This document shows, one piece after another, positions 1 through 38,300 of a DNA stretch of 64,000 nt; the first letter of the stretch is position 1, and the number at the start of each line of letters is the position of its first letter. The stretch is from NCBI GenBank assembly GCA_030704615.1, contig CM060732.1, positions 73,408,001 to 73,472,000 on the forward strand, written 5' to 3'. The DNA is from Takakia lepidozioides. Lineage: Eukaryota; Plantae; Bryophyta. The position numbers and the translations under genes are program-made. A model generated the notes under the pieces. The model was given only the letters and a program-made list of their open reading frames with translations, was not told the origin of the DNA and did not search any database.

Positions 1-2450
1 TCTCCTAGGTGTCCCTTCTGCAAGCCATACTTGCGCAAACCCCTCTTCACCATCTAAACAACTCTCTCTGCCAAGCCATCGGCCTCAGGATGATCTCAAG
101 AAGTGGTACGGTGGTCTATCAAAACTTTATCACACAAAGCCTGAAACTTCCCCAAGAACTCTCTCCCTTGGTCCGTGAGCACCTCAGCTGGAGCACCGAA
201 TCGGCTAAGCACACGATCCAAGAATGCATATGCAGCCCCCTCGCTAGCCTTGTCAGGCAATGGAACCAACCCAATCCACTTAGAGAAGTGTTCCACCATC
301 ACCAACACATATATGTGGTGGCGCATAGTTAGTGGCAAAGGTCATGCGAAGTCAAGACTCCACATGTAGTCCAATCCCATGATCGGAAGAGGATGCAACT
401 GGGGTGTAGGGGCGTTGAATGAAGCACGCACCTTGTTACACACCATGTACCAAGCCACGAACCGTTGCACCTCTGTGTGCATACCACGCCACCAATACTG
501 CCCTTGCAGTAGACTGTGAATGCGTCGCACTCCAAACTGCCCCAACTCCTCATGGGCATGCCGCACTAACCGTGCACGCTGTGTTGGGTGAGGCACGATC
601 CTCACCCGACCATCCTCCCACACTCGAAGCAGGTGTATCCCCTCCTACTTGAACCTCTTGGCTCGTTGCAGGATCCGATCCCTCTCCCTAGCAGTCACAG
701 TGGCTGTCGTGTCTCCCGTGCGGAGGTAGTCCAACACAGCCGAATCCTCATATATATCTCTAGTACCACCTGGCTCATCACTAGCCTCAGGGTCCTCAGA
801 CACTCCGTCTACAGTCATCCCTGTTGTAGGTCCAACCTGACCTCCCGATGCCAAGATACACAAAAATGGAGATGCGTGCCATCCCGACACCATCTCCTCG
901 TCCGTCTCACCATGCCACTGAGCTCATGTGTCATCCTGCTGGCTCGTGCATGGATTGCGACTCAATCCATCCGCATCTCGATTGACCAAACTCGGTCGAT
1001 GCACAACCTGAAAGTCATACTCCTTGAGTATGAGTGCCCATCGTGCAAGCTTTCCCGTAAGCTTGTCTGATTCCATCAACCACTTGAGTGGCTGGTGATC
1101 CGTGACAAGGGTAAAGAGATTTCCGTAAAGATAGCACGTGAAATGTGCCACGACCCACACTGCAACGAAGCACTCTCCTTCATATGAGCTATACTTAGCC
1201 TCTGCAGCGTTGTTCGAGCGGCTAGCATAAGCCACTACGAACTCTCTTCCCTCATCATCCACCTGTGTGAGCACCGCTCCAAGCCCCAATATGCTCCAAT
1301 CTGTATGCACCTGAAAGGGACGCCCCCTGATAGGTCGTCTCAGGATAGGCGCCGAAGACAACCTCGCCTTGAGCTCTTGAAAAGTTTATTCCTGCTCATC
1401 TTCCCACTGCCACTCCTGGTCCACCTTGGTCAGCTTGGTTAGAGCCTTTGCAATGGTACTAAATCCCTTGACAAACCGTCTATAATAATTTGCCAACCCC
1501 ATGAAAGCTCGAACTCGACTCACATCCGTGGGGCGTGGAATTTGTGCAATGGCCTCTACCTTAGTCTGTTGTACCCCCAATCCTCCAGGATATATCATGT
1601 GACCCAGATACTCAATCTGGTTGTGGAAAAACTTGCACTTCCCCGGATGCAACTTCAATCCGTGTGCTCTCAAGCGCTCCAATACCACCTGCAGGTGTCT
1701 CTCATGCTCCTCCACTGTAGCGCTAAAGATGATGATGTCATCTATGTAGCACCGAGCAAAGTCCACCCCTGCTAGAATCCTATCCATGACTCTCTGAAAC
1801 TCTGCAGGAGCGTTCTTAAGCCCAAATGGTAAGAACCGCCACTGATATAGGCAATCTTTGCCGTGCTCATTGATCCCCCAGAATGTCGTCTTCTGCTTAT
1901 CCGCCTCCTTGATCGGCAACTGGTGATATCCGGATCGTAAATCCAAAGTGCTAAAGATCTTAGCATGCCCTATGGCATCAAAGATCTCCTCTGGTGTTGG
2001 CATGGCATACTTATCGGACTTGGTCTGACGATTTATAGGCCAGTAATCACCGCACATACGTCTCTCCGTCCAATTGCCATAGACATCCTTCTTGGCTGAC
2101 ATCACCGTGGCTGAAGCATACTCTCCACCAGAGAGCTCCACCAAACCTGCCTCCCATAGATCTTGAGTCCTCATCTGAATCAAAGACCTCTCCATGTCAC
2201 TGTATCTATAGGGTCTCCGAAAGATTGGCGTGTCAGTGGTCAACTCAATACGAATCTCCTGACCCTTCAGTGCTCCCAAGTCCTTGCAAAGCAATTCTTG
2301 TAAGCCCTCAGGAACCGCCGTATACGCTGTCTCTCTCCTCCGGTGACCAATGTCAGGCTCCCAATTGTCCTCCGTAACTGCAACCTTAAGTCCAATGGGC
2401 TTAGAGGTAGAGGACGCGTCCAGGTTGCTATGTTGCAACCTCTTGAGCTC
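1..2450 (-). mobile_element. Ty3/Gypsy LTR retrotransposon pol remnant (RT-RNaseH-integrase), frameshifted
   Basis: Successive minus ORFs: RT (STLDLRSGYHQ, LPFGLKNAP, YIDDIIIF; 1386-2477), RNase H (VHTDWS..GLGAVL, AYASR, TDHQPLKWL, NRDADGLSR; 924-1361), integrase zinc finger (HEELG..YWW; 342-623) and core (SLDFA, EHFSKW, LTDQGREF; 96-338). RT-RH-INT order is Gypsy. Confidence 0.95.
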
Positions 2451-2689
2451 CGGGGAGAGTCTCCGTACCACCTCCACCGATTGAAGTTAATCAGGAAATT
2501 GAGTATGAAGTTGACGAAGTCCTAGATTCTCACATCAAGTATAGACGTCTTGAGTATTTCGTACATTGGAAAGACTACGACATCAGGGAACGAATATGGA
2601 AACCTTCATCCAACCTCGCCAATGCATTTGACAAAGTCCAAGAGTTTCATCAACGATATCCAGCTAAGCCCCGAGCTTCACGTCAATAA
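2451..2689 (+). mobile_element. Chromovirus integrase C-terminus with chromodomain (second element, opposite orientation)
   Basis: Manual translation GRVSVPPPPIEVNQEIEYEVDEVLDSHIKYRRLEYFVHWKDYDIRERIWKPSSNLANAFDKVQEFHQRYPAKP..* matches the group I chromodomain of Tcn1/Tf1-like chromoviruses. Missing from the ORF track. Confidence 0.9.
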
Positions 2690-2705
2690 GACGTCATAAT
2701 GATGA

Positions 2706-2919
2706 TGTCAGACAAGTTAGCTTCAAGGTGAAGACTCCACATTCACTATACTTGATACATGCTAAGGAGGGAGGAGCACCACACATCAGTATATATAGCT
2801 ACACTTCCAGCACTCTTGCATCTTGTATTGGCAGTATGGAGTCACAGGAACCAGATACATTGGAGTTGTTGCTTACCCAACTACCAGATCAGCCGTTCCG
2901 ACTCTCACGACCTTCAACA
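2706..2919 (+). repeat. Putative LTR remnant of the chromovirus
   Basis: Starts TGTCA after a 'tgatgtca' context also seen at 9013-9020, contains CAGTATATATAG (also at ~9335), ends ..AACA. Follows the chromodomain stop codon. Confidence 0.55.
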
Positions 2920-3477
2920 TCACGCCGACGCTCTCGAGACGATGGGCCACCAATGTGACGCGTATTTCCTCGTCTGGACCCCGTACGACGGCAAGTGAAG
3001 CATACTCGAAGTCTGATAATTCTGTTGGAGGTTGAGGCTTCGGCCTGGGGGGTGCACTCCGGCCAGTATGTACCAGCCACGTGCGTGCACAGGAGGGGGT
3101 ATTTAAACCCCCCCCCATGTACAACATTATACATACATGGGGGGGTTTAAAACACCTTAAATATAATATTACAAGAGGGGGTTGTTAAGTTTTAAATGGT
3201 AGTCTAGTGGTAGGGACGTTATTTAGGTTGTGATACACCGCGGGATCAAATCACGGGATCATTCTTTTTGTTTTTTTTTTTTTTTTTTTCTTTCTCCCCG
3301 CGATCTTTCTCCCCTTCCCTCCCGCGGGCACTCTTCTTCCTCCCCTCCTCTCCTCGCCTCTCCTCTCCCCTCCTCTCCCGCGTTCTTGGGAGAGTCAGCT
3401 TGGTCTTAGCAGGTCGTTTCAATCTTTGCCTGCTCAGCTGCACCGTGGTGGTTCTCAAAGACCAATCCGACATTACT

Positions 3478-6300
3478 TGACTACAGACACCAGCAGCACA
3501 TAGAAGAGAGGTCTTTTTGGGTTGATGGGAGGTCAAATCCTCCATGGGTCATGACACAATGTCAAGGACAACGTGGTGAGGGAACCTTCTTCTTCGACGT
3601 ATTTCAGCTTGTGTTTTGCCCTCTCATCAGACTCGGCCCTGAATTTGCAGCACGGAGCAGATCCTTCACGATTGTGGGACAACTGCAATCGCAAAGTGTG
3701 GCGTTTTCTTAAGGTACGATGTGAAGAAGTTTGTCCATCCTGCAAATGCGGGCTCTTGCCTCCTGTTAGTACCCTGATTTAGTATTCTTCCTAATGTTTA
3801 CAAGGTTCTTGGGAGAGTCAGCTTGGTCTTAGCAGGCCGTGTTTCAATCTCTGCCTACTCAGCTGCACCGTGGTGGTTCTCACAGACCAATCCGACTTGC
3901 AATCTTCTGTCTAGAATTGCAGACCTATGTACAAGAGCAGGACACTGGATCAATATGTGTGGTCACATCCAAGTTAGGAGTCTTTGAGGTATAGAATTCA
4001 GACTAAGAATCTGATTTCCTTGCTTTCTGATTTGTGTCTATGTGTTCTTGAACATGCTCAACTTGCCAGCTCCCAGCCAAACCATTAGCACAAATGCCAA
4101 GCCTCCATTTCCAGCCTTGCTTCAGACGCCGACCACAGTCAAGAGCGAAGGAGCAACTTCCCAGCCACTGGCAAGCACCCCCCAGGTATCTGACGGCATT
4201 ACATAGAACCCCAATAGCAGCACCATGTTCAAAAGTGCTCTCTCCTTCTCCGATAAATACCAGAGAATGGATTCCTCTTAGTTAAACACCTGACCTTTTC
4301 TTCCATGTGCTTTTCAATTTGCAGGTAAACAAGAAAGTTGGAAGACCTCCAGAATCGCGCGCCATTGGTGATTGGCTGGCTGTAAGTCTAACTTCATGAA
4401 TTTCTTGTTATTCTCACATTCATGACCTGTACACATACCTAGAATAAGCATCTTGACGCCTAAGCAATCTATTATTCACCGTGCACTCTAGGGCAATCTG
4501 GAAGCAATGTCTGCAAATTGGACAATTGTGTACAGAGTCAGGTCTGCTGGTTTGCCTTATATTCGAGAGTACGAGTTCCGATTGTGTTGTACATGTACCA
4601 CATGTGCAGAAGACACTGAATTTACCCCTGGATGCGCTGGTCCGTGGAGTGGAGAAGGAAGGCAATGACAACGAGCAGCTGGTCAGGCAGGTCGACAGTC
4701 TTGGGAGTATTATGGCATGGCCGACCTTGTTGTCGCCCCTGCACTTAAACCGCAGAAAGAGCACTGAGTCCGTCACATCCGTAGACTCTTCATAAACTTT
4801 TTTTCTGCATGAATGCTCGTTCACATGACTTCTACAAGCAGACTCTCTAGGATTTGACAATGTTGCATGTGGTCACACTCGCCAGAAATCAGGCTTTGAA
4901 TGAGGGAGGTTTGCCATTAGGTTGGGCTTGGTATTTTGGTCATTGTCATAGCCCGGGTTGGACTGTTTAGGGGAAGTATGACTACAAGACACAAGCAGCA
5001 CACACAAGAGGTCCTTTTGGGTTGATGGTCGGTCAAATCCTCCATGGGTCATGACACAAGGTCAAGGACAAGCTCCAGATTTCAAGCTCCAGATTACCTA
5101 TGATTTCCTGTGGAAGGATAGATACAAGAAACCTGCATGGGTAGATAATCAACTTGAAGCCGTAGCAGCAGCAGCACAATTGATAAAATCAGGCACTGCT
5201 GATGAAGGCACCTTCTTCAACACACCTGTTTTCTCATCCTATCAGAATCGGCCCTAAATTTTCATGTTGAATTTTGCAAGTTTGTTGGTTGAGTGAATCT
5301 AGGATAGTTTGGAATGACTTTGACATGATACTGCCAATGTGACAACAGGAAAGTATCCAGAAACATGTAACAGAGACAAGGAGAAGCTGTGGAATGAATA
5401 TTTTTCTGACCCCAGACAATGGTGGGACAACCGAGGCAAAAAGGTGAATGCCTATCAGATTACCAGATGTCATTCTGAACACTGCCCCTACCCTGGTGGA
5501 CATGTATGCCAAATGTGGGTGCATCGAGGATGCCAAGGGATCAGTGTTCAACTCTATGGCTGAACGAGATGTGGTGTCGTGGAGTGCGATGCTTGCAGGG
5601 TATGCACAACAGGGGTGCGGGATGGAGGCTCCAACCTTTGAGCAAATGATGGGGGAAGGGGTGAAGGCCGCTGACATAACGTTTGTGTGCGTATGGCAGC
5701 CCTGGAAAAGGGCAAAGAGATCCCTGGTGACATCATCAAATCTGCAATTGTACCAGATGTCATCCTGAACATTGCTCTGGTGGCCATGTATGCCAAATGT
5801 GGGAGCATTGAGGATGCCAAGGGAGTGTTCAACACTATGGCTGAATGAGATGTGGTGTCGTGGAACACGATGCTTGCAGGGTGTGCAGAGCAAGAGCGTG
5901 AGATGGGGCTTTGGAGACCTGAAAGCAGATGATGGGGGAAGGGGTGAAGCTCGACCACATCATATTTGTGTGCGTTTGCAGTGCGTGTGCAAGCCTGTAG
6001 CCCTGGAAAAGGGCAAAGAGGTGCATGGTTGCATCACCAAAGCTGGAATTGTACCGGATGTGATTATGAACAATACCCTTGTGGACATGTATGCCATTGT
6101 GGGAGCATTGAGGATGCGGAGGGAGTGTTCAACACTATGGTTGAACGAGGTGGTGTCGTGGAACACGATTCATCCAAGAGGTCGATTTTAAACACAAGAT
6201 TACTTCTGATTCCCTGCGGATCAATAGCTACAAGAAAGTAGATGGTCAACTAAAGGCAGCAGCTGCAGCGGCACAGTTGATAAAATCAGGCACCTCAACC
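3478..6300 (+). pseudogene. Fragments of OSB-type PDF motifs (organellar ssDNA-binding motif), several diverged copies
   Basis: LWNEYFSDPRQWWDNRGKKVN (~5349-5452); PDFKLQITYDFLWKDRYKKPAWVDNQL (~5075-5156); DFKHKITSDSLRINSYKK..VDGQL (6184-6252); frameshifted DY.HK...LWVDGRSNPPWV (~3478-3550 and ~4980-5050). These match the W..FF..P..WWDNR..K..P..PDFKHK.T...LW....P.WV consensus. Confidence 0.8.
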
Positions 6301-8072
6301 ATGACCACAGCTTCTGAAAGAGAATCAAGAGAGGGAGTCCACAATGCCTCTTCTGGCACTTCTGGGCATGTGAAGATACTTTGTGCGACAGCCTGACAGA
6401 GGCTCTACAGACTCTAAACCAAGGAGGCAGTTCAGCAGATTCAGATATGTATGTCTGTCTCTTGCTTAAGTGCATCAAGATGGAAGGTCTCGAAGCTGGC
6501 AAACAGGTGCACACTCACATTATCCAAAGTGGATTCACGCCAAATGTTTTTCTACTCAACACCCTTGTCAACCTGTATGTTAAGTGCCGGAACATCAGGG
6601 ATGCTCACCAAGTGTTCAACAAAATGCCTCAATGATCTTTGATCACGTGGAATATTATGTTGAAAGGATTTACCAAGCATAGGTGTGGTAGGAACGTTTT
6701 GGAGACATATGAGCAAATGATGTGCGAAGCGGTGAAGCCCAACCACATTTGTTTGTGTTTGCAATGGGTGTGAAAGCTTGGGAGCAAGCTGGAATTGTAC
6801 CAAATGTCATCTTGAACACTACCCTTGTGGACATGTTTGCCAAATGTGGGTGCGTTAAGGATGTGAGGGGAGTTTTCAACACTCTGGCTGAACGAGATGT
6901 GGTGTCGTGGAATGTGATGCTTGCAGGGTATGCACAACAGGGGCACGGGATGGAGGCTTTGGAGACCTATGAGCAAATGATGGGGGGCGGGGTGAAGCCT
7001 AACCACATCACAAGGCATTTCACCAGATTCAGATATGTATGTCTGTCTCTTGCTTAAGTGCATCAAGATGGAAGGTCTGGAAGCTGGAAAATAGGTGCAT
7101 ACTCACACCATCCAAAGTGGATTCACGCCAAATGTTTTTCTACTCAACACCCTTGTCAATATGTATGCTATGTGTGGGAGCATCATTGATGCTCATCAAG
7201 TGTTCAACAGAATGCCTCAACGATCTTTGATCACGTGGAATATAATGTTGGCAGGATGCAGTGCGTGTGCAAGCCTGGGAGCTCTGGAAAAGGGGAAAGA
7301 GGTCCATGGTGACATTGTCAAAGCTGGAATTGTACCAGATGTCATTCTGAACACTCCCCTGGTGGACATGTATGCCAAATGTGGGTGCATTAAGGATGCA
7401 AAGGGAGTTTCCATGGCTGAACGAGATGTGGTGTCGTGGAGTGCGATGCTTGCAGGGTATGCACAGCAGGGACGTGATATAGAGGCTTTGGAGACCTATG
7501 ATCAAATGATGGGGGAAGGGGTGAAGCCCGACCACATCACGTTTGTGTACATTTGCAATGCGTGTGCAATCCTGTCAGCTCTGGAAAAGGGCAAAGAGGT
7601 CCATGGCGACATTGTCAGATCTGCAATTGTATCAAATGTGATTCTGAACAATACCCTCGTGGACATGTATGAAGGGAGTGTTCGACGGTATGGCTGAACG
7701 AGATGTGCTGTCGTGGAGTGCGATGATTGCAGGATATGCACAGCAAGGGCGCTGGATGGAGGCTTTGGAGACCTATGAGCAAATGATGTGCGAAGGGGTG
7801 AAGCCCGCGCTTTGCATTGCATGATGTTGAGGAAGAGCTTAAAGAATCGTCTCTTTGCCAACACAATGAGAAGCTGGCCATTGTTTTTGGGCTTATCAAC
7901 ATACCCTCTGGGATGTCTGTGGGGATCATCAAAGAATCTTCGGATGTGTGGTGATTGCCACACAGCCACCAAATTCATCTCAAAGATAGCTAAGCAAGAG
8001 ATTGTTGTACGGGATGCAAACCATTTTCACCACTTCCAAAATGATGTTTGTTCTTGTGGGGAGTATTGGTGA
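5453..8072 (+). pseudogene. PLS-class PPR-DYW (RNA editing factor-type) pseudogene, scrambled and duplicated
   Basis: Repeated P/L/S motifs (LVDMYAKCG.I.DA..VF..M.ERDVVSW.AMLAGYAQQG; GVKPDHITFV..CNAC..L.ALEKGKEVH). DYW domain HNEKLAI..[+1 frameshift]..[29 protein letters not shown] ends at 8072. Many frameshifts and stops; E1/E2 and PG box absent. Confidence 0.92.
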
Positions 8073-8773
8073 AATGAAATGATTGTCACCTAATTGAATG
8101 TATTAAACTCTGTCAGCTGCGAGTCAGGTTGGACTCCAACAGTGGCAGCAAAGGCGCACGAAATCTCTTTTTGGAGAGGAATTCTCAACAGTAGGTTTTG
8201 AACATAATTGGACCTTGCGAAGGTTGAAACTGTAGAAGTTCAGAAACTGTCCTAGTTGATGAACAGAGGTGCAGTGACTAGGTCTTAATGGTCTTCAAGA
8301 GGGTCACTCTCTGATGAAAATACCCAGGACTATATATCAGAAAATGGAAACTTTCTTCAGGCCTCTTGCACATCGGGCATTGACAATGTCCTTTTCATCT
8401 CTGCATCTGATTATTGTTCAAAGTGAGATTCCACAACAAGTTTTATTGAGGGCAAACAGATTTTTTTAATTAATTAATTAGATTTTATTCTATTTTTAAA
8501 TAAATAAACTTGATATAATATAAAAACATACATATACATATTTGAGGGTATTTTTTAATTATTGAAAATAGAAATATACATACAGAAGGGGGTACTTTTT
8601 AAAAATTATATATTTCTATATATTTACAGGAGGGGGTTTTATAATCTTCAAAATATATGTACAGAGGGGGTATAAATGATCCAATGACCCGTATATAGGG
8701 GGTTTTTTTTATTAGGCGGCGAACGCACGTGATACGGACAAGTTATAAAGAGTGCACCCCCCAGGGGCTTCGG

Positions 8774-9400
8774 ACCCAGAGGGCAACGAAATCATGTTTG
8801 AAGGCAGCTTCGAAAATCAGAATGCTCAAATCACTGCGTGGTCCTAAGTTCAAGGTGTTGGACACTATGCAGGGACCTATAAATCATTTGAGTCAAGAAT
8901 GAAGAGCCGAAATACTTGGCAAGTACCATTCGCCGGATTTTGGATTTTCTCCAACTCTAAGCAAGTCCAAGATTTTACCGGTCCTCGACGAACTCGACGT
9001 TAGAGGAGGGGGTGATGTCACGGACATAGCCCAGATGAACTTACTAGGAGTAAATACCAGAAGTTACTAAGTTACCATGTTATCGGTAGTTGCCATGATC
9101 TACCATGATCTACCATGATTTATCATTACTTACCAAGTTACCAGAAGTTTACCAAATTACCAAGAGTAACTTTGGAAACTGCTCAGGAAGCTTCATTTGG
9201 AAGAAAGTTCTCCATCAAGATACCTCCTTTTGTTTAAGGAAGCTTCTCTATCGAGAAACCTTTGTTTAATCTTGGAAACTTCTTCAGCAAGAAACCTCCA
9301 TAGGGGAAGCTTCTTAGGGAAGCTTTTTAGTAGCCAGTATATATAGGAGACGAGACTGGACACTTTTCACTAAATTCACTTCTAACAACCTAATTAAGGC
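8774..9400 (+). mobile_element. Continuation of the host LTR retroelement: internal remnant, PPT and 3' LTR start
   Basis: Reading frame EVEASDPEGNEIMFEGSFENQNAQ is continuous across the insertion once one TSD is removed. Polypurine tract AGAGGAGGGGG (9002-9012) is followed by TGA-TGTCA (LTR start 9016), with a TATA-like CAGTATATATAG at ~9335. Confidence 0.65.
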
Positions 9401-9468
9401 TTTAAGTCTTCAAACATAATCTAATGATCTAATGAAAGCTTCAAGTCTTCAAACACAATATAAAAAAA

Positions 9469-9985
9469 CCTCGTGTATTAAAATCCCTTATCCAAGACTA
9501 TACCAAATGCAAACATTAGGTTTTCAACCCTAAATCCTAAACTAAAAATTCTCAAAATTGACTTAGTATACAATCATAGTAGAATCCTAGAATAATGTTG
9601 ATGAAATATCTTTTGTATCTATCCACAAATGTACTTAAAAACATAAGAGATTCAAAACAAAGAGGAGAAAGTTGCCCAATGTTTTTTTAGTTTGTCTTTG
9701 GTGAAGTTTTCGCTTTACAAGTTGCTTGATTGCTTTATGTTTCTTCTTCCTTCTTAATGAAATGGAAATAAACCTAAAAATACCTCGTGCATTAAAATCC
9801 ACTATCCAAGACTATACCCAAGGCGAACATTAGGTTTTAAACCCTAAACCCTAAACTAAAACTTGAGAAATTTGACTTAATATACAATCCTAGTGGAATC
9901 ATAGAATAATGTTGATAAACTATCTTTTGTAGCTATTCACAAATGTACTTCAAACATGAAGAGACCCAAAGCAAAGAGGATAATA
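9469..9985. repeat. Diverged direct duplication (~200 bp, period ~315 bp) with telomere-like motif
   Basis: cctcgtg.attaaaatcc..tatccaagactatacc..acattaggtttt.aaccctaaa.cctaaactaaaa.. at ~9469 and ~9784. Confidence 0.8.
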
Positions 9986-12018
9986 ACGAAGGTTGAAACC
10001 CTCTTGAAAGAAATGAGAATAAAACAATCAAGCAATTTGTGAAGCGAGAACTCCACCACAAAGAAAGTGAAATGAACTGGAAGAGACAAACCCTGAAGAG
10101 ACACCTAATATGGATTATAACCATTTTAAATATCATTATCCATCCATCCATCCATGAAATTTTCCATCCACCCAGGAGCCCTGTGTGTGGGTCGCCATAC
10201 AGTAATTGTGTGGCGAGTTGCTGGATTTCCCATATTGTGTACGGATTATTGCATGGCGAAAAATTGGCACGTGGAAAGAGGAGGCGATGTGGCAGCGCCG
10301 GATTGTAGGGCCAGGAAGAGGCGACGTGGCAGGGAGAGGCCAGCAAGAGAGCGCATGGGAGCACGTCACAGGAGCTGACCTGGCAGCGGGGCCAGCCAGC
10401 AGCCCACCTCGGGCATGAGGACGGGAGCCCGGGCCGCACTATCCTCAAAGGGCTTGGGACATAGGCGAGGGCGGGCGGTGTCCCATTTGGACGCCTTCAT
10501 GGGCAGGTTAAGTTACTGTGAAACAGGATATTTTCTCCTCTCACTATCAAGGGGCCTGATTTGTGAGCTGTCGCTCCCAGGTGTTTCCCTTTGAGAAAAA
10601 AAAAGAAGAAAAAAATATAGTTCCCCAATGGCTCTTATAGTCCGGCAGTGGGCCAAGAAGGTACCCTTCATTCAAGCGTTGGCAACTTCAGTTCACTGCG
10701 TAACTTTCACCTCAATGTCAATATCCACCTCTGCATTTTACATCTCCTTGATATGAATATATCTGTAGCCCGTTTTTTAGGAGGAGAGGAGGAGAGTAAT
10801 CAAACTGGAGAGTATGAGAAGGAGAGGAAATCTGCCAGTCGGGAAACAATCAAGAACAAACTACGAGATTCTTGAACACATAGGACAGTGCAGGCCTATG
10901 TGCGTGGTGATCTGTATGGCAACAAAGTGATAGTGTTGTACAAAGGATTTTGTAGTCGATTTGGTGGTTCTGCCTTCCTTGCTCTCACTTTCGAAATCGA
11001 CCACAAAATCCTCTATGCCAGTCCAGAATTCTTCTTCATGGAACATTCCATTCTAATTGGTTAGTCGGTGCAGCTGATGGAGAAGGATCAAATCATAGCA
11101 TGAGAAGATGATGGCCTTAGCGAGGGACGTGGAAAGAGAAGTGGAAGGAACAGCTAGTAGAATAACCGAAGGATGGCACCATACATCATGTCGTTGTGAA
11201 TTGAAAGTGTTCTTTGGTGAAAGTGTTGTTTGTTTAGATGCCATCTGCTGGGCACAGCCAAGACGAAACTGTGAGCCTAGTTATTTTCGGGTTTCAAACA
11301 AATGACTGAAGACCTCAAGGCTGTAAATAATCTTAAGCACACAAGCAAGACAAGATTCAAAGCTTTACCCCATCACCTCTAATCAAGAGAGTTTGACAAG
11401 GCTGAGCAATTCCTCCATCGAGGGTTGGAGTAGGCCTTGATGACATTGTAGCAAGGAGGACTTACTTTGTTCATGGTGCTGTGTGTCGTGTTGCTCCATA
11501 TAGAGGAAATAGCAGCTCACTTGGAATATTCAGTTTCTCTCTTTGCATGACCTCTCCAAGAGCTGTGTTGGGATGGCTATAGAGCAATCATGTGGCTTAA
11601 ACTCTTGCAGGACCACACACTGTATCCGTTGCAGAACACCATCAGAGCATACGCATTGCCCTTAACGGTCCAGAGACACTTCCACGCATTGCATGACCAG
11701 CCGACAGAAAAAGCTTTGAACGGGTCCAGAAAAAGAGAATATATGCTTTGAATTTGCATTGAATTTTTAGAGCCAAAATGGCCTCTAATAAAGATGACAT
11801 TCTTCAAGAGATGTATCTCCATCTCCAGCTTATTGCTACAGGTCACAAACAAGGACCTTCAATCAAATCTGGTGAGTAATTACAAGGGAGTCTGGTCCAA
11901 CATGGACCTGCTCCAAGGTCATACTTAATCTATCATAAATTTATCAATTGTAGAAATAATTCAAACAATATAAATGATGTAATCAAAACTCCACCCGGCG
12001 AGAGTGACCTTCTGGTCA

Positions 12019-15000
12019 CTACAGGGCATGTAAGTCTAACATCTCATATTCATGTGCAATTTGGAGAGGAGTATCCTTGGAGACAGGTCGCTCCTCAGAC
12101 CACAATTCCAGATTGCAAGCGCCAGGTCCCCAATGAATGAGACAAGTAGCCACCTCCTCCACGTTAAACCTGTTGACCAGTGCAAGACCCGTTACCTTGT
12201 CCTCCAACATCCATTTCCCTGTCCACACACCATATCCACAACAATCGTCAAGCATTCTGCGTACATAGTTGCAAAGCCATTATTAGCTCCCACCAACAAC
12301 TTCCAAGGCTGTTCAGTTCATCTATGGTTTCTGCATTTCCTTGGTAGAATCTCTGGCTGCAGCCTCAGCTGAAAGAGAAAACCTTTTTTATAGTTCTATA
12401 CTCTTCCATGCCCCACTTGCCATGAGTATGACCATTCCCTCACTGTAGGAGGGCCATTGGCTATTATATCCCACAAGGCAGATATACAAAAATCAAGTTT
12501 GTGCCCAGATACTTAATACAGCTCCTATTACAGCTCCTATTAAACAAATGTTTCAAGGGCCAAACGAACTAAGACAACAAACCCATCTGGCACATTCTAC
12601 GCATGTTCCTCCCCAAGAGCTGAGCACAAGAAACAAATAAGTCCTGTAATCTGCATGCTTCACACCCTTTGAACTCACCGTTGGGTCTGTCTGCATCTCG
12701 GAGCCATGTTTCCTCGAACTCCAGGTTTGCAGTCAGTTCATGAGATGTCCCATCTACCGCCACAAACTTTACCACCGTTTCCAAGGGATGTGCCAATTTG
12801 AATGTGGGATGTACCCGGAGACAGACCAACCTGCCAAATCACGTTTATTCCATTAACAGCGCACTTGATCAAAAAGACTGAAAGGAAACTACTCACTGCA
12901 ATAGCACACATGATTCTGTTAATCCCTCACTATGTAACCATCATGACACCAGGGTTAACCTTCAACAGGGCAAGAGGAAGCTGCTGCAGCATGAGAGCAT
13001 TAAATGTCAAAGAAACCAGCGAGCGCCCCTGGCGATAGTGTCTCTGCTGTGGAGGTGAAGTGACATCAAACCCAGGGAATTAGTTCCATCTTCTTCCTGA
13101 ATGAGTTCATGTAATGGAGACAGCAGGTCCAAGCCTGCGTGGTTTCATGGTCATACCTAGAAAAGCCGCCAGAGCCTGCACCTACCGACCTCGCTACAAT
13201 CTTGGAACAAATTCGCACTACATTTGAAGATCCCTCTGAGAGGGCAATCTGGCGACACAAGCCAAGTCCACCACCTATGTCTCCTTCCATCTCCAAAACA
13301 TTTCCCCCCCCCATTTGTGCAAGATTGTGTCTGCAAAACCAACCAGGTCACAGTTGAGACCTTGGCAAGGTGAGACTAATCATCAGACAACCCAAGGTAC
13401 AATAACATTCAAATGATCATATCCCATGACCCTGCTGGTGAAAGCACCTCACAGGATCGAGCCAATCCCCAGCGTGTTGAGGCCTGGAAACTGGCGGATG
13501 GTCGCAAATGTCACAACTGCTTTGGTTTGAGAGGTAAGCGCTATTTCTGTTTTCCCGCTGTATGAAATCCTTAGAGCGGCTCTAAGGGATCCTTAGAACG
13601 AACGTAAGGGTTATTCTCACAACTGCCAGGGTTTAGGGTTTAGGTGCTTTAGTGCACATATAAATCCACGTAATCTCAACAACTGAGTACTCAGAACCTG
13701 TCTGCTGCAATTGTGTCTTATCTGCACTAAAAAGAAGCACACAGTGGCTTCTTGAGGACAGAGATAACCAAGGTTATTCTCACAACAACTGCCAGGGTTT
13801 AGGGTTTAGGTGCTTTAGTGCACATATAAATCCGCATAATCTCAACTGACAACAACTTGGTACTCAGAATCTGCCTGCTGCAATTGTGTATTATCTGCAC
13901 TAAAAAAAAGCACACAGTGGCTTGCTTTACTCAAAAGTATACCTGTTGACTTTATACTCTTCCATGCAGCCAGAAGACCGATGCTCCACCCCACTATATT
14001 CCTCGTAGCCTCCTGATTCCAATCTACCCTCGATCCACTCATAACCTGTACAAACCCACCTCATCTTCAATGTTAGTAGGGTTGGTTTTAGTTTGTCCAC
14101 AGAGTCATCCATGAATGCGACACCGAGGGTAATATTTCTCACTGCCTTGACCTTGAACATCCGACAACATAAACAACACATGCACATTAGCAGCAGAGAG
14201 GTTTTAAGATTGTACTCATAAGACGTTGTTCGCCGCAGCCTTGTGGCCATTGACCCCGCGCCCAGTTTGAGCGGGAACAAAAGGGACAGAACCTACCTCT
14301 GTCAGGGGCTGACGTTGGTAGTAAGACTTACCTCCATATAAAGAATTAATCCGGGTTTTCCAGATATCCTCTAGAAATCCCTTCACACAAGCATCAATCT
14401 GCTGTGTGTGATTTGCCCAAAAACTAGGCCTCAGGAGGGCCTGGGCTTTTGGCTCAGCCTCGAGACTTTCAAAGTTGGTAAACAGGGGTACAGGCACAAT
14501 AACCTTAATAGATTTGAAGAGAGCATCTCTTTGGTGAGAGAACGCCGGACAGTGTATCAGAAAATGAATACTGTCTTCAGATTGCCCACACAACAGGCAA
14601 TTGCACTCTCCCTTTCCTCTCTGCTTCTGTTTGCTGTTCAAAGGTAGGCTTCCTGCCCTGAGTTTAAATTTCAGTCTAGTGCCGAGAGTGGGTAGACCCT
14701 TGAGGTCATCCAAGATGTCCTCCCCCATGTCACAGACTGGAAACAAGTTCAGGGAAGTTTTCTGCCTAACTTCATTTTCATCAGACAATCTCATGGCAAC
14801 AGACATGGCTGAGGACACTACAGCCTCTATGTCAGATTTATCCAGCAGGGTCAAGACTTGCGGATCCAGGTCCAGGTCCTTGAGGATCTCTTCTACTCTC
14901 TTCTGCCAGGACTTGGCCTGTTTGACAGGGCGGTCCTGTTTCCAAGATGTAGAGTCGATTAACTTAGGATATCTGGTGTTGGGCATATGTTGCTGACCCC

Positions 15001-18000
15001 ACCATCTGACCTTGAATTCATCTCGTCGGGAGCTTAAGGACGGAATGCCAAACTCACCCGGAACAGCCACATTGGCTGTTTTGGAGCATGCTGACATACA
15101 CTCCTTAAGCACCCCCACTTAAATGGATTCTAGAGACTTAGCCTGGTTGGAGTTATCAACCCATATAGCAGATCCGTACTCCAAGGCAGGTCTAATAACG
15201 CGACAAAGCATGGTTTTCTTAACCTCAGAGTTGACCCCTCTGCAGTGGAAAAATTTAGTGAGCCCCAGAGCTTTGCCCTTGCCAGTTTGAACAACTTTCC
15301 AGATATGTGCATCCCAATTACAATTGGAGGAGAACTCAACGCCCAGGTAAGTGTAGGAAGGGAGGACCGGGATCTCTTGACTACCCCACTGCCACTTAAG
15401 ATCACTTCCTCCCTCTCCTCTGTCGTTGAATGCTACCACTGCACATTTGCTGACATTAGCCTCTAGCGTTAGAGAGGTCTTAAGAGCTAGGTATTTAGTG
15501 GGGTTTACAAGGAACTGGAGTCAACCTGTTGGCTTGAATATCATCGAAAAGATACGACCTCCAGCCCAGGGCACCACTTTGACCAAGCAGTTTCCACCTT
15601 CAAGGTCTATTGACACCTTCACAGCCTCGCTCTGTGGAACATTCATTTCTGCTTCATCTACCAACACCTCCCCATTCTCTGCATCACATACAAAACAACA
15701 CAAGTATGTTAGAATGATACAGATATACCCACATAAGAAACATCAACACCAAACCACCTTATCAGGTTACTCTAAATAAAAGTAGATAGAAAAAGCTAGA
15801 AAAGTCACATACCAATCTTTGCATTCTGTTGCTTCCAACTGGCATCAACAAGCTGCGCAATTTCAGATGTTGCAGGCAGCTGTATCCTGATTTCCTCTCC
15901 ATCCACACCCTCAGCTTCAACCTGCAACAAGATTGCCTTTTTAGGAAATCGACCAACCTCCAGCACATCTTACTACCACATTTGCCTGGTCAAAAAAGGA
16001 ATAATACATTAGTAGCATTTGCTGGCATTTGCACAGACCAATCAGCTGACCTGGGTGAAATCACCAATCAACACGCGCACGTGAAGGGGACGTTGAGGCC
16101 TCTCCCAGCTGCCTTCAGTGTGGGCCACTTTTATCAGAACCTCTTCCCCCTGCCCATTCTGGCTGGGAAGCAGCTGTGCTTCATAATGTGTAAGTAGAAA
16201 TTGCCCCTGCTGGTAATTAAACCCATCGTCATCATCCTCATATAAAACTCCCTCAGCTTTCCCTGTCACCACCAGAGGCAAGAAGAGGACATACAATCTT
16301 CAAGTTCCATTCACAAGCAACAGATTGACAAGAGCATGAGTCAAAATGAAGTGGTCACCTTGCCTGCCTTAAGCCAGAAAGTGGAGCAAAGCTAACTCTC
16401 TCAAACATGATCAAGAATCTATACTTATTGATCGCTTCCTGTAAACTTGTAGATGACATTCTTGGAGGCATTCTAGTCCCCAGAGCATACCAGCCCTAGG
16501 GTATGGCCTATGGACTCAGCCCACGATTGTTATGCTGCTCGCATCACAACCAACGAAACTCTCAGTGATTTGGGTGAAGTGTTTAAGGACTGGCTCTAAC
16601 AGCATTGTACAGAACATGGAATTGGATTCTCGAATGCTACTTTCCTTCACCCGAACATAAATGTGCCTAGTGTTTTTATGGACGTTACACATAGGGTTGG
16701 GATTGCCTTGCCATACACACTGTCCTGACAAGACAGAAGAAAGAAGAGCACAGTTCCTCAGCATTTAAAGAGAGGGTACATCCACGAGGGGAAGAGTTAC
16801 CATTCTGATCAAGAGCCACCAACAGCGTCACAGGGTCAGTAGAGCTGGTCTGGCTAGTATGCTGTACCACAGGGCCTGTTGGTACAATGGCCCCCCCCTT
16901 CAAGTACAGCAGTGGCAGCTCCTGCAATCAATGCAAAAAGGTTAAGGGTTCGCCCTATATACCTGTAGAGACCAGCTTTTTCCAGAAACATCTACCACCG
17001 TAAGTCATGAGAATAAGAATGACCCAAATTCTAAAGCTACAACTGCCAACCTACTTACTGCAAATCAACCTCTCGGAGAATTCTCTGCAAAAATAACAGG
17101 AAAGAAAACAACTGCCACAAAGACAACATATATCTTCCTCCTTAAAATAAGCCTGAAATACTGTTGCCGCTTCTTACAGGGTGGTCATCCTTGAAATTGA
17201 ACCGATGCCAGATTCCATTGGGTAAGACAGGGGTTTTGAGCGATGCTTTTTCCTTTGATTCAATACTGCAAAACCGTGCAAATAAACAAAGTTTAGTTGC
17301 GGGCTAGTGCTCTTTTCAGAACTCTCCTTCAGCCTGATCAATCAAGATGGGCAGCTGGGGACATAATTCAAGACCATGAGTATGATCAGTCCACACAGAA
17401 AGTCTCGCTAGAGATATAGGCATATAGCTATGAAGCAAGTAGATGTAGAACCAATGTCAATTGAAAGTTTGAGTCGTCCAAGAACAAGCGCTGCAGAGGA
17501 CCTATCAAACAAATTGAATATTCAAACAAACCTCACCTGGCTGAAACTAGAATTCCGCCCAACAGAAAACTGTCGTCTACCTTCCGGAGCTTGGGATCCT
17601 TAGGATCTGGCACATACAAGACACATTACAATAAAGGCTCAAGCACAGCTAGAGAGAGAGAAACAAAGGAAGAAAGAAACTTTGTAATGTCCGCGGAAAG
17701 CCCAAAGAGCTTATGGGGCAAAGGAAAGCATGATACAAGACAGAGACAGAGATACACCGACCACGCCAACCTCTTTGCCCCTTTCAGAGTACCACCCTCA
17801 GATCAAGCAAACATCTACTTCCTCCTTTGGCATAACTCAATGAGTGCTTGAATCTTCTAGACTAAGGATGAATTATACCAGCAAAAAATAATGGGGCCAC
17901 AACAGGCACCCCTGTGAGATGTGCCTTGTAGAAGAGCGTGTAGAAGTGTGGCAAAAGTCGATATCTTCTATTCAATGCCAACCGACAAATCTCTTCAACC

Positions 18001-21000
18001 TGCAAACACGCACATAGATGCTTTTAGGAACATCCCCTTCTGAATGAGTAAATTATGGATCTGCGTCAACATTATCTTCCTCCATCTTTCTCCTCTGATA
18101 TAGCATTCAAACCTATGGAGGAATTTCTCTTGGACCTGTGCAGTACCAGTCTTCTTTATGACTTCACTCAGGCGACAGCTTATTCACCTTTGAGCAGCAT
18201 TTCCCGCATTTTGAGGCCTTACATATATTGGCCTCAACCTCCTCTCTTGGATTATCTAGTAGGTCATAAGTTTTTGCATCACAAGGTGCAATAAGAGGGT
18301 TTCCTTTGGGAAAAAGCTGAAAAAACAATCAGCCACATTTTTGAAGGTTAATCCAACAATGGAACAGGCCTTTCATGCCAGCAGTGGCCTCCACTGTTAC
18401 CCTTTACCCCACTTCTTCTGCTCCATCCAGACCAGGCTATTCCCAATGTCTACAGCAAGAAAAAATAACTACGTCTCTTTCTTAACACAAGCCCGCAAGG
18501 CCACAGCAAGCAAGGTCTAATGACTACACTCATTTCCCAACTTGCAGGTTCATCGAGATGGATTAGTATGATGGTGCCATATCTGCTTGAACTGTGCCCA
18601 CTATTGATTTTCATTTTGATCACACATGGTCACTAACACAGATACACTCATCTCCAGGAAGAAAACCTGCAAAACTCATTTACCTTGGTGCCAAAAGACC
18701 ATGGCTCCTGATCAATCGTCCCCTGTTCAGAGTGTCCTCTTGCAAAAGGCATCATAACACCAATCCCCATCCAGCGAGCAAACAGCCTAGGAGTAGCATC
18801 TCCCGCAAATCCACCGATATCAGGACCTGACATTGCTTGCCCACTGAGACCCTGTGTATCACAGGCAAAGAGCCCGCAGCTTTAATAAAACAAAAATGTA
18901 GTAGCACAATCTTTCTGATTTTTTGGAGAAGGAATTAGATTCAATATAGGGCAGGGAAATTGATAAGACTAAAGCTTTTCACAGCAGTCTGCTGGCACCC
19001 CAGTAACTTCAATTTGAAACCTCCCAAACAATCTAGAGAGGCTGATATGACAAGTTTGGAAAAAAAATCCAAGATACGTCTCGACCAGCAAATAGCATTT
19101 CTAGTGTCCAGTGATTAAGGATTCCAACAGAAACTCATGCCTAGAGGATGGCCTGGTGACAGATAAGGATGGTGTGCAAGTAAGGCCAGATGGGTACCAA
19201 GTTGATTGCCATAGGGATACTCATTTTCAAATGCTCCCAGTTGGCAAGGTTGTCCCCAGTCCAGGTGGCAGCATATCTTTGACTTCCCATGAAACCTGCC
19301 CTAGTCAAAACAAAAGGCCTTTTGTTGGCATTTGCTTGCATCATCCCCGCGAACGTCGATTTGGCTTGTAGCATTCCATAAACCTGTTTCAAAGAAGCAA
19401 GAATTAAGATAGGTACCCGTAGAGTCTGCCTTATGCAGAGCCCACAATTCTTGCCTGGTCCTTTTTCCGACCCGCCCCCGCTTTGCAGGAACTCTAGGGA
19501 GCTCCAGCAGAGGACTCCTAATACAGGACTCAGCAGAGGAGTCCAAAGGAGTCCCTCCTAACCACCAATAACTATACAAACCAACTCTTTTATGCTTATA
19601 AGGTGTTAGAGGTCTTCTCAAGGATAAGAAAGAGAAAAAATTCCAGCAGTCCACCACCCTGAGAAGGAGTAACTGTATTCAACATCCTTTCAGCACATCA
19701 ATGCACAGTATACTGCAGCAAAATTTCACAAGAGAGAGGCACACAAGACAGTTCAACCAACCTGCTATTCCCTAATTTTCAACCCAGTTTAGTATGGTTC
19801 ATTACTCATGAGAATCCAAGCAATCATCCCAAGGTTCTCAATGAATGTAAAGAGTTGGTACATTATGGTAGTGCAAGTGACTTTGTCGACCACCAAGCTC
19901 TTCATCCCCTCTGTGAATGTTGGTCTCAGGCATTGTTTTGGAGACAGTCTGCGCATAAACATGTCAAATTAGCCTGCTACAACCATATAAAAAATGTTGT
20001 TTGCTTCTGTGGGAAAAATTGTTCATCAACAACCAGCTACTCAGTTGACACATCTTTGCTTTAAATATGACTGCTCACCTTGAACACCGCAGGTTCATTC
20101 ATATCATTCCAGATACCATCAACACCATTGGCAACAAAGTCCTTGACTAAGCCTGCCCACCATGCCCGTACTTTTGCTTGTGTAAAATCAGGGAACGAAA
20201 CCGGCCCTGGCCAGCACTCTCCTGCCAAATATGAAACAAGAAACATCGTTAAGTTCTAGTCACACTGCATACATGCTTACGCATATTAAGTAGTTCACTT
20301 CTGGTAAGACAACAACAACAGCAAGAACACAATGTGGGTCAGGGCCAAAATAAGTACTTACCAACATAGGGCTTGCCATTGGCATTCAAAATCCAGACAT
20401 CCTGAGCAGTTCCACTGTCATAGGGATGGTAACCCTTCTCACACTTCAGGCCAGGATCCAGCATCCACACTCCCTTGAAGCCGTCATCATGCAAGCTCTT
20501 TGAAAGTGCCTGTGCATCTGGGAAGGTCTCCTGAAATCAACATGCATCAGCAGGTCTTAAAAAATGTTCATACAAAAGCAACAAAGCATTCTTGAACAAG
20601 CTAGAACAACCTCTATCTCAAAAATGGGACATGGACACTAAGGAACTACATAGTTCCATACAGAGATGTCGACCAATTGGAACCCCTCAGCTTACCACCA
20701 CGAAGTTACAATTGTGTCAAAGCGAAGAAACACAATTACAGACAATCACATCACTCTGGCAGTTATGAGTGGGGTGAATTGTGGCAGCACACCCCTCATA
20801 ACTGCCAGAGCTCAATAGCTTAAACATACCATACTGAAAGGCTCCGTTTATAATTCATAGTGTGTCCTGAGTAGTGTTGCTTACAGGGTCAACAGTGAAG
20901 CAACGAAACCCATGCATGTAATCAATGTCCATCCACATCACATCACATGGTAATTTCTTTTCTCGAAAAGTTTTTGCCACCTGAATGAACAATCAACAAC

Positions 21001-35323: not shown

Positions 35324-38300
35324 ATGGAGAGAGGCCGAAAGGGCGTCCTGCGGCACATACATAACCCTTTCCCAAAGCAACCGAGTACTTTGGGATTTGT
35401 GAAGGGGCAATTACTGTTCGATGCACGAGCCTTACCTTCTGAAAGCTTTGCAGCTGGCCGCGGGTTCACAGTACAATGGCAGGCTGAGAGAGGGGGTTCT
35501 CTTTCGGTTATTCATCAGAGTGAACCTGACAGACCTCTTTGGTCTACAGCTTCGGGGGCGGGGTTCGTGTCTGCCGCACTAGGTAACGAGAGGATAGAAG
35601 AGAGTAGGGGATCATATGCTCTTCATGACCAGATTGACATTGTTTGCAATTACCAAACGGTTGAACAGATTACTGTTGCTTGGCCAGGAAAAGGGAGCCA
35701 CGAACACTCTTTCCAGCCTGCCTCCTCCTGCCTCTCTTGTAATACCGATGCTGATGGGATCAACAAACGAGGAATAACCAGAGATTTTCTAGCTGATCAG
35801 CCGAGAGACTCGGAAAAAGTCAGGAGGAACAATGGCTGCAACTGTTGCTGTAAAATTCCAGAGAAGAGTGGCTGTCCTCAAGCCGGGGAAGTGTACCTGT
35901 TGCCTTGCGATTCCACCGACGCTGATGGTACCACCACAGCAGCAAATGGACCCACTGTACTTGTCAAAGGTTGCTTATACACTGATGCCAAGCTAGCCCA
36001 AGAGCAACTCGCAGCTGGTCACAGCCAAGGCGTAGGTTCCGAGAGCGGACCATTTTACAAAATGTATCGCCCAAAAAACTCGGGCTTCTTTAGCTTTCCC
36101 GAAAATCTGCGAAGTGTGGGTGTGCGTTACTGTCTAATGTTCATGGAGAGAAGAGACCACCATCTTGGCTTTCAGATATGGTTGGATTTACCCGTCACTC
36201 TTGAAGATTACATGACACGACATTTTTGGGGAAGTGAATCACTGAATCATCCTGACATTATCTTCGGTGAAGGTGGAAGGCACGAGGTTGATTGCGACAG
36301 ATTGGACAAGCACTCAGAAAGCCCTTTGTATGATATTCCTGAACGTCTGCAGTGGCTTTGGTCGAATGAACCCTTCTCCGCTTTTGCTCCATTGACAACT
36401 TACAGTGATTTGCGGAAACGGAGGAGATCAGTGAACGAGGTCGGAATGGTGGATATGAAGGACAGGTGTTTAGTGAGAGGAGGACAGTCAAGTCTAACGA
36501 GAGTGCGGAAATGCTTGAAAAACTTGAGGAGTGCGGGCAGAGTTTCAAACATTATGAGGCTTGTTAGGGATCAAAGCGGCGTTCAATTGCCCCAATTCAA
36601 CCGGATTCAACTCACCTATTTATCAAACAAAGGGGAGAGATTCTATGGTTTTGGTGAACAGTTCTCCTACTTCGACATGAAGGGAAGAAGAGTGCCCATC
36701 ATGGTCCAGGAACAGGGCTTGGGAAGAGGGGACCAACCCATCACCGCTGCTGCCAATCTGGTAGCCCACAGGTACCGCAATCAACTCGCCGTGATTGATG
36801 CCATAAAACCACCATTTCTTGTGAGGCGAGGGCTATCTCCATGCCTGCTAACATATAGGAACGTATCGTCCCCGCAGCAATGCATGCACTCAAAAGTTCT
36901 TCTTGCTGCAGTGAGGCCAGCAATCTGGTTAAATTTCAAGCCACAGTATCTTAGTTGGAACCGCATACCCCACTGGTTAAGACAATACTGTGGATTTGCA
37001 GTGATCTTGGGATTCCATTTACATTGACCGAGATTATCGGGTTACAAGATAAACTGAATTTTACCAAATCGGTACGTGAATGGTCGTCTTTTTGAAGTGT
37101 AAAGACTCTTTGTAAGAACGTTTCTGCACCTTGGAAACCTCAGTTGTACATATACAATACAATAAAGGTGCACAAGCCGTTGCTCTGCCAGGATGTATAG
37201 ACACTGGTCGTGAATATGAAACACCTTTAGTCAATGTTTTTCTAAAGATGATACCATTGCAGTCTGGTGTTAAACACGTTGGTCAGTATGCTACTTTGGT
37301 GAGCTCTAGATTGACCACTTGGCTGCAAGTTAGGTGGGAGTGTGAATGAAGACGATGATGTTTGGAATGTACTTGAACTGGGATTGGCGCAACTGGTGGA
37401 TGCGACAGGGCAGGAGGAGATTGGCATACGACATATGCACCCGCTCCATATTACATGACTTCGGACATGCACTCCCTCTACCTGGAGGGCTACGAGCATG
37501 CGGTTTTTGACCTCACTCGCCATGACCGCGTCCAAGTGCAAGTGAGTGTTTTCCTTCTCTTTCTCGTGTATGTTCTTGAAATTGTCCCGATAGATGGGTT
37601 ATTGCGGAAGTGTTACATGCACGTGTGATTTTGAGCAATACATAACTTGCATGTTGCCAGTAAAGGGTCAAGGTTTGCTCAGGGCCGTGAATTCTATTTT
37701 CCTGGAGGAGGCTGATGGTGTGATAATGGATTGTGTATCACACCATAGTTGGCTTCCCATGGGCTATATGAATAACAGTCTCTGCAACCATTTTTCAAAA
37801 GGAAAAACACCTTGGCACACAGAATCCCAGTATTGTCATTAGGGAATCCAGAAGTGTGCTCTTAGGTTGGGGCTATGGTAGAATGACAGTGACACTGATT
37901 GGGTGCCCCAGGTCCATGCAAGTCGCATACAGGGGCGAATACTGCATGGGCGTACACCTGCAGAGCTTATTGAGCACTACACAGCAGCCACGGGTCGCAT
38001 GCGCGAACTTCCTCAGTGGATCACCAAAGGTGCTATTGTGGGTATGCAAGGGGGTTTGGATGCCGTGCGCAAAGTTTGGCAGCAGCTCCAAGACTTTGAT
38101 GTGCCAATCTCTGCATTCTGGCTCCAAGTGAGTGTGACATGCACTTTTCTCATTGCAGGCACTTCCATGACCTTCTCAAGATTATGTTTGTTGTTTTGTG
38201 ACTGATTTAATCAAATTGAATTGATGCAAGCACCCCAAGCCATTCCTTCAGAAAACCTCCAGGCTTGTGTCATTATGTTTCTAGCGTATGTCTTTCTATT

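Follow-up and report, generated by a model that had tools for sequence, protein, structure and literature searches.

Among plant transposon superfamilies, an 8-bp target-site duplication (TSD) is the hallmark of hAT elements, which have the terminal consensus 5'-YARNG and a weak target consensus, nTnnnnAn. The transposase of their autonomous members has a BED finger, an RNase-H-like core and a hAT dimerisation domain. Mutator-like elements (MULEs) usually have a TSD of 9–10 bp and long terminal inverted repeats (TIRs) of at least 100 bp, and the duplication measures 3 bp in CACTA, 3 bp in PIF and 4 bp in Sola elements. Helitrons have neither TIR nor TSD, and their ends read 5'-TC...CTRR-3'. 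For the genes encoding pentatricopeptide repeat (PPR) proteins that carry a DYW domain, families of 1,500–3,000 genes have been described in hornworts, lycophytes and Takakia, and their expansion has been attributed to retroposition (PMC13386178). Takakia has 2,016 PPR genes, and intron loss is found in only 52% of its dispersed PPR duplicates (PMC13386178). Here we describe a 5,722-bp unit, positions 3044–8765 between the outer TIR ends, in a 64,000-nucleotide stretch of the moss Takakia lepidozioides (GenBank assembly GCA_030704615.1, contig CM060732.1, positions 73,408,001–73,472,000, forward strand; "the window" in the following). The unit carries PPR-DYW sequence and is very probably a single non-autonomous TIR transposon of the Pack type, filled with host-gene DNA and encoding no functional protein.

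Element ends, target duplication and empty sites

The 16-bp TIR CCTGGGGGGTGCACTC occurs in the window only at the two ends of the unit, on opposite strands (Table 1), with no further match elsewhere in the 64 kb. The two copies agree without mismatch (16/16), where 0.03 matches would be expected by chance with up to two mismatches allowed. The 8-mer GGCTTCGG directly adjoins both TIRs and is identical at all eight positions. In ungapped as well as gapped comparison of the two arms the TIR match stops at 16 bp, and the arm-to-arm comparison revealed no longer, imperfect TIRs past this point. The perfect 16-bp TIRs and the exact 8-bp TSD of the initial annotation of this stretch were thus both found again, with 0 mismatches, and its placement of the whole PPR/DYW region between the TIRs agrees with Pfam and blastn, which locate all of this sequence inside the unit; a blastn comparison of the element with the window returned no other PPR sequence.

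The host of the insertion is clearly a degenerate Ty3/gypsy long terminal repeat (LTR) element on the − strand, in which an integrase zinc domain (342–620), an RNase H domain (924–1361), and a reverse transcriptase (RT) domain (1386–2477) can be recognised. No recognisable gag or protease domain was found in the open reading frames (ORFs) of the left flank or in the right flank. By contig comparison, the sequence on either side of the insertion is high-copy in the DNA runs. The reading frame was followed across the insertion site by removing the element and one TSD copy in a script and translating the flanks. The earlier statement that the LTR-element frame rejoins holds only weakly: 68 codons are open over the joint, but a stop codon is present 7 codons upstream, and the flank beyond it contains no noteworthy ORF. 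That the host repeat is continuous is better demonstrated by contigs of the empty site than by this reading-frame argument.

For this comparison, public contigs from the same organism were aligned to window positions 2950–8900. They came from a DNA run (X1), from a plant metagenome of another study (X5), and from putative RNA (X6), the RNA nature of every run so labelled being a guess; depths given below are summed over contigs and are not copy numbers, and coverage holes in contig data prove nothing. In X1, eight contigs have a joint 3035→8766 that omits exactly 5,730 bases, i.e., 5,722 + 8, and four more have an equivalent joint with a shifted cut, which gives 12 contigs in this run. Run X5, which is independent, contributes 2+1 contigs with the same 5,730-base joint, making 15 over two studies. 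In addition, 21 loose ends fall at 8766, and their consensus spells the left flank. The empty-site contigs join the two flanks and retain one GGCTTCGG copy, and are most simply paralogous copies of the retrotransposon without the insertion. Because one TSD copy is present and the whole 5,730 bp is absent at these sites, the entire interval entered as one piece. The search for single-copy empty sites that had been proposed as a check has therefore been carried out with a positive outcome (12 contigs in X1 and 3 in X5), and insertion of the 5.7-kb unit in one piece, as originally annotated, is backed by the TIR and TSD as well as by the empty sites.

The recency of the insertion is weakly constrained. 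The initial annotation called it probably recent, whereas 0 differences over 24 paired positions (16 in the TIR and 8 in the TSD) bound the divergence only to less than about 12.5% at 95%. The contrast of scrambled cargo with intact ends had been part of that argument, but the scrambling need not be decay that followed the insertion; the internal duplicates of the cargo differ from each other by 3–9%, and this divergence can be placed neither before nor after the insertion.

Subterminal arms and family membership

The two arms share more than the TIR. A CACGTGCGT box is located exactly 18 nt inside each TIR, at 3078–3086 and, on the reverse strand, at 8723–8731. The G5T-core motif ACAGrAGGGGGTwTTT occurs seven times in the 180 bp next to the ends and always on the + strand, with three copies in the left arm (3089–3187) and four in the right (8582–8708), and the same G-run-plus-T core is present in the TIR itself. 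The exact string AGGGGGT has 13 sites in the 64-kb window, of which 6 are among the subterminal motifs, again all on the + strand.

In X1, the summed depth reaches about 62,000 at 3109 and 9,000–12,000 at 3168–3174 in the left arm, and in the right arm 5,000–15,000 at 8570–8611 and 30,000–56,000 at 8655–8685. The left arm is 20–200 times higher than a low-copy insert within the element, for which the summed depth in the same run is 266–438. Each subterminal position is covered by 12–26 variant contigs, with 17–26 in X1 for the right arm. Read from this depth gradient, the termini would belong to a multi-copy family whose outer ~100 bp are common to more members than the inner arms are. The combination of the TIR with the CACGTGCGT box gave 0 matches in metagenome contigs, and no identical-product records were found for the ORF with the DYW match, for the 200-residue PPR ORF, or for either of the two ORFs that run from flank into TIR.

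The putative-RNA contigs span about 3348–8123 and a short 3' tail to ~8226; none lies on the left arm, and on the rest of the right arm their depth is very low. This pattern indicates that the arms are transposon sequence and the middle is gene-derived.

Two structural peculiarities of the left arm can be noted. The palindrome at 3098–3156 is near-perfect, with a C-run and a G-run flanking an AT-rich loop. An Rfam search of the element gave 0 matches at the gathering threshold, and sub-threshold matches to microRNA precursors or hairpins only, on this palindrome. The segment 3200–3289 (+ strand) is tRNA-like in its first part, with blocks that resemble a D arm and a T arm, and closes with a run of 19 T (T19). 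It may be a decayed tRNA, or the head fragment of a short interspersed element (SINE), with a Pol III terminator; neither ARAGORN nor Rfam reported a tRNA in the element (0 each).

The PPR-DYW cargo

The best protein relatives of the cargo are about 50% identical and come from Diphasiastrum, Sphagnum, and ferns, in a searched set that lies outside the proteome of the source organism. The best of them are two PPR proteins of the lycophyte Diphasiastrum complanatum, P0001 and P0002. Both proteins have a long PLS-PPR array headed N-terminally by a WWDNR...PDFKHK motif, of which P0001 has one copy and P0002 two. The presence of this PDF-PPR architecture in a lycophyte implies that it is not peculiar to the present genome. 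The motif of the cargo resembles the "PDF motif" described for OSB proteins (PMC6963530), to which it may be related, and no Pfam model matches it.

In the cargo, PDF-like pieces of the WWDNR...PDFKHK kind are present at 3651–3716, 5072–5205, 5349–5443, and 6166–6300. Between 5448 and 7694, Pfam recognises PPR repeats in pieces of ORFs, and its DYW_deaminase match covers 7788–8069 with an E value of 5e-24. The first partial copy of the 5' end starts with the 5' untranslated region (5'UTR) blocks A1 (3382–3471) and B1 (3480–3571, with a start codon at 3551), followed by a GT...AG interval (3576–3650), a PDF-a-like exon from 3651, and further intron-like sequence; putative-RNA contigs cover 3348–3944. 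The second B block (B2, 4980–5071) is 94% identical to B1 and has its start codon at 5051, and the first residues encoded in each B block (MTQCQGQ) resemble the MVQCQGH N-terminus of P0001. In X6, contigs join block A straight to block B, with a loose end at 4987, and this direct joint indicates that A and B form one transcribed 5' exon in living relatives. The PDF-a exon at 5349–5443, which contains ..WWDNRGKK, is bounded by AG and GT, and a breakpoint with a loose end lies near 5453.

Downstream of this breakpoint the repeat array is disordered. The N-terminal first-repeat region occurs twice (6425–6669 and 7013–7257, 91% identical), and coding similarity to the PDF-PPR proteins changes frame at least 6 times. 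At ~7806 a PPR repeat runs straight into the DYW fragment, of which only the final ~86 codons (7811–8072) are left, and similarity to a putative-RNA contig begins exactly at 7806; the E1, E2, and PG box segments are absent from the cargo. An extra base near 7931–7933, which the relatives do not have, shifts the frame of the DYW domain between the HxE and CxDCH motifs. Towards the 3' end, the summed depth of putative RNA falls from thousands at 7925–8123 to tens at 8124–8322, with one X6 contig reaching 8226. Over the PPR part, the putative-RNA contigs show 3–10% difference from the present copy, which indicates that they derive from relatives. Compared with related contigs, small private indels are seen in this copy, with about 11 or more nucleotides missing at 5692, a C missing after 5998, and the extra base at 7931–7933. 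These indels are consistent with pseudogene decay.

The longest ORF in the element is 200 residues. With this ORF length, at least 6 frame switches, and a truncated as well as frameshifted DYW domain, the present copy is, as judged from its reading frames, a dead pseudogene mosaic that encodes no functional PLS-E-DYW editing factor. The cargo nevertheless reaches from the 5'UTR with its start codon to the stop codon and the 3'UTR, and for this reason a whole PDF-PPR-DYW gene may once have been present in an ancestor.

Other captured sequences and the genes of the window

Two pieces of the cargo are not of PPR origin. The 1,083-bp segment between blocks A2 and B2 is low-copy, with the summed depth of 266–438 given above compared with about 5e5 on the PPR part, and a 353-nt DNA contig begins at its edge, at 3895. 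A 1,911-nt X6 contig matches 4070–4241 and 4610–4769, with 64 nt replacing the intervening 368, and the second matched block starts at 4610 right after an AG at 4608–4609. By these matches, the segment is part of a second host gene that is expressed, and the intron has been retained. No Pfam family was recognised in 3897–4979, for which no large protein search was made. The other piece, at 8243–8423, has 67–69% nucleotide identity to window positions 14462–14643 and 55035–55208 (blastn), and 51% amino acid identity over 43 residues (E 1e-10) to an ORF at 14216–15118, which in turn has a faint zf-RVT match (E 0.053).

The two retroelement tails to which these matches belong, 14216–15439 (−) and about 54990–55460 (−), are ~85–90% alike by eye. 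Both contain ORFs with a CxxC...H...C knuckle, and the ORF upstream is similar to the part of non-LTR elements that follows the RT. Elsewhere in the window, the longest ORF (567 residues, 35324–37027, +) matches no Pfam family, and its best ESM-Atlas look-alike, at 0.78, is below the lead threshold. Ordinary host genes are represented at 39549–40061 (+), 19141–19392 (−), and 53568–54302 (−), by exons of glycosyl hydrolase family 31 and an exon of a radical-SAM protein.

Table 1. Coordinates of the element, its parts, and the insertion host in the 64-kb window.
Feature	Position	Strand	Remarks
Insertion host: degenerate Ty3/gypsy-type LTR retrotransposon	1..3035	−	continues right of the insertion
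Left TSD copy GGCTTCGG	3036..3043	.	single copy in empty-site contigs
Left TIR, 16 bp	3044..3059	+	0 mismatches
Left subterminal arm	3060..3261	+	CACGTGCGT, three G5T motifs, palindrome 3098–3156, tRNA-like stretch 3200–3262
T19 run, then CT-rich low-complexity DNA, promoter- or 5'UTR-like	3262..3381	+	
First partial copy, 5' part of PPR gene	3382..3804	+	repeat families D10, D11, D13
5'UTR block A2	3805..3896	+	95–97% identical to A1
Low-copy fragment of second host gene, 1,083 bp	3897..4979	+	exactly between blocks A2 and B2
Second block B, PDF-b motif (PDFKLQ...), Ala-rich linker, intron-like sequence, PDF-a exon	4980..5453	+	
Scrambled PLS-type PPR repeats, three frames	5454..7806	+	interrupted by second PDF-b piece 6166–6300
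DYW domain, last ~86 codons	about 7807..8072	+	HNE and CGDCH present; ends EYW + stop
3'UTR-like sequence after DYW stop	8073..8242	+	
Internal fragment of retroelement ORF tail, CxxC...H...C knuckle	8243..8423	−	
AT-rich right subterminal arm	8460..8749	+	four G5T motifs, CACGTGCGT on reverse strand
Right TIR, 16 bp	8750..8765	−	0 mismatches
Right TSD copy GGCTTCGG	8766..8773	.	

Probable capture at the DNA level and proposed mechanism

Intron-like GT...AG intervals are kept in the element at 3576–3650, after 5443, and at 4242–4609, and over the last of these a putative-RNA contig is spliced, with the splice ending at the AG. No poly(A) was found, the only homopolymers of at least 8 nt in the element being T19 at 3271–3289 and a T8 at 8703. 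Since introns are kept and poly(A) is missing, the cargo was most likely captured as DNA, as in Pack-type elements, and not through mRNA and retroposition. A retrocopy of a PPR gene was considered as a candidate and rejected, as the GT...AG intervals are kept, 3' poly(A) is lacking, and the block has no TSD of its own beyond chance. With regard to the latter point, an internal TSD that would mark a separate insertion of the PPR block had been named in the initial annotation as an observation that would speak against a single unit. It was looked for, and the longest direct repeat shared at the cargo boundaries is 8 nt, as in shuffled sequences.

No transposase was found in the element, where Pfam searches of 10 ORF pieces return PPR and DYW only; a Transpos_assoc match inside one of the PPR ORFs is sub-threshold, at 18 bits compared with a cut-off of 27.7. 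A transposase encoded elsewhere in the genome would then act in trans, and would recognise the 16-bp ends, the CACGTGCGT (CACGTG) box at 18 nt, and the seven G5T motifs. The 5,722-bp unit would have been excised whole and pasted into the Ty3/gypsy retrotransposon, creating the 8-bp duplication GGCTTCGG. As for the interior, we suggest that it is filler DNA that was copied in during repair of an internally deleted ancestor, probably via template switching. The parts of the intron-containing PDF-PPR-DYW gene in it range from the 5'UTR to the 3'UTR and are duplicated, deleted, and frameshifted. A mosaic that includes non-PPR host-gene and retroelement fragments is as expected for gap-repair filler DNA.

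The identification of the locus as a TIR DNA transposon with PPR/DYW sequence as cargo agrees with what had been annotated at the outset. Two of the roles proposed for it there fare less well. A route to new editing specificities is not backed by the present copy, with its longest ORF of 200 residues and its truncated and frameshifted DYW domain, and a function as source of small interfering RNAs against PPR genes lacks structural support, as no inverted repeat of 25 nt or longer exists within the element.

Alternative explanations

The assignment to a superfamily is less certain than the assignment to the Pack type. With an 8-bp TSD, TIRs that are short, and arrays of subterminal motifs, hAT is the best guess, which, on these terminal features, we hold to be about as probable as not. 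Other candidates can be set aside on the same features. For a Pack-MULE, the TSD of 8 bp and the TIR similarity that ends at 16 bp do not fit; CACTA, PIF, and Sola are excluded by TSD length, and CACTA termini are not present; and a Helitron would not have ends that carry TIRs and a TSD. Membership in a superfamily other than hAT, e.g., a short-TIR Mutator-like group or a lineage undescribed in land plants, is somewhat less probable. It would account for a CCTGG end and a TSD that both depart from the hAT consensus, but an 8-bp TSD typifies hAT, and the duplication lengths of MULE, CACTA, PIF, and Sola are different. More generally, several observations weigh against a single hAT-like Pack element belonging to a family. 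The TIR starts with CCTGG and not with the hAT-typical YARNG, and the TSD GGCTTCGG does not fit the hAT target nTnnnnAn. Family membership, a shared cargo, and an autonomous partner are putative, and the depth values that suggest a family are sums over contigs, not copy numbers. Furthermore, none of the contigs listed bridges the junction between flank and TIR, which leaves the insertion without assembly-independent support.

The lack of bridging contigs is also what could be cited for the absence of any insertion, i.e., that the paralogues lost 5.7 kb by deletion between the GGCTTCGG repeats, or that the assembly is chimeric, and the depth in X1 is zero at 4542–4939. As coverage holes prove nothing, as perfect inverted ends that abut direct repeats are not made by deletion or misassembly, and as the PPR sequence is foreign to the gypsy element, we regard this explanation as having almost no likelihood. 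A composite origin, in which a cargo-free transposon inserted first and the PPR block was added separately by retroposition or nested insertion, is highly improbable. The T19 run at 3271–3289 near the left cargo boundary and the retroelement fragment near the right one could be taken as traces of such an event, but GT...AG intervals are retained, poly(A) is missing on the + strand, and the longest boundary direct repeat of 8 nt equals the shuffle level. Moreover, the retroelement piece is internal to an ORF and is not a 3'-anchored insertion, and the empty sites lack the full 5,730 bp, not just a part of it. A more far-reaching alternative gives the TIR family an active role. By copying entire, functional PDF-PPR-DYW genes and shuffling their PPR and DYW modules, it would add materially to the expansion and diversification of editing factors, with the present copy as a decayed representative. 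A cargo that keeps introns and extends from a 5'UTR with start codon to a stop codon with 3'UTR, and hence possibly a complete gene in the ancestor, points in this direction, as do multi-copy termini, and since only 52% of the dispersed PPR duplicates of Takakia show intron loss (PMC13386178), there is scope for a route via DNA. Against this, the copy at hand is dead and no intact copy was seen in the data searched, and PPR genes are so numerous that their presence among captured genes is expected by chance. An active role of this kind is therefore unlikely, and a single Pack-type transposon that was filled with host-gene DNA and moved as one unit accounts better for the locus.

Significance and comparison with known systems

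Taken as such an element, the locus provides a clear example of a DNA transposon that has moved PPR-DYW sequence, introns included, and for which an empty site is known, and a second, DNA-level route of PPR-DYW dispersal would exist in at least one genome of this kind. The open literature that was searched contained nothing on the TIR string, on capture of PPR-DYW sequence by DNA transposons, or on Takakia transposons with PPR sequence. A wider proposition, to which we assign a low probability, is that in a land plant which diverged early and edits heavily, a TIR family with an 8-bp TSD once took up an entire PDF-PPR-DYW gene, introns included, and was amplified with it. If this is true, cut-and-paste transposition, and not retroposition alone, has dispersed and recombined editing-factor genes, and some of the roughly 2,000 PPR genes would sit in, or descend from, such elements. 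This copy by itself alters nothing about how editing works. The TIR together with CACGTGCGT at +18 nt provides a search key for a genome-wide census, and the value of the locus lies in that census.

The element falls in the known class of gene-capturing TIR transposons. As for the Pack-MULEs of rice, Pack-CACTA, and hAT elements with gene fragments, it has TIRs and a TSD, lacks a transposase, contains fragments of several host genes with introns kept, and moved as a unit. Its 8-bp TSD and 16-bp TIRs fit neither Pack-MULE nor Pack-CACTA, and unlike in the Pack-type systems, the host is a non-seed plant and the main cargo is one PDF-PPR-DYW gene from UTR to UTR instead of short exon snippets. 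With non-autonomous hAT elements of the Ds-like type it has in common the 8-bp TSD, the short TIRs, and subterminal arrays of short motifs, but the termini read CCTGG and not YARNG, the seven motifs are all on one strand, and a hAT transposase partner is hypothetical. The retroposed PPR gene copies to which PPR expansion has been attributed (PMC13386178) resemble the present case in that PPR-DYW sequence is duplicated in dispersed fashion to an unlinked site beside LTR elements. In contrast to those copies, the element described here keeps its introns, has no poly(A), and forms a TIR-bounded block with an 8-bp TSD, as expected for movement at the DNA level.

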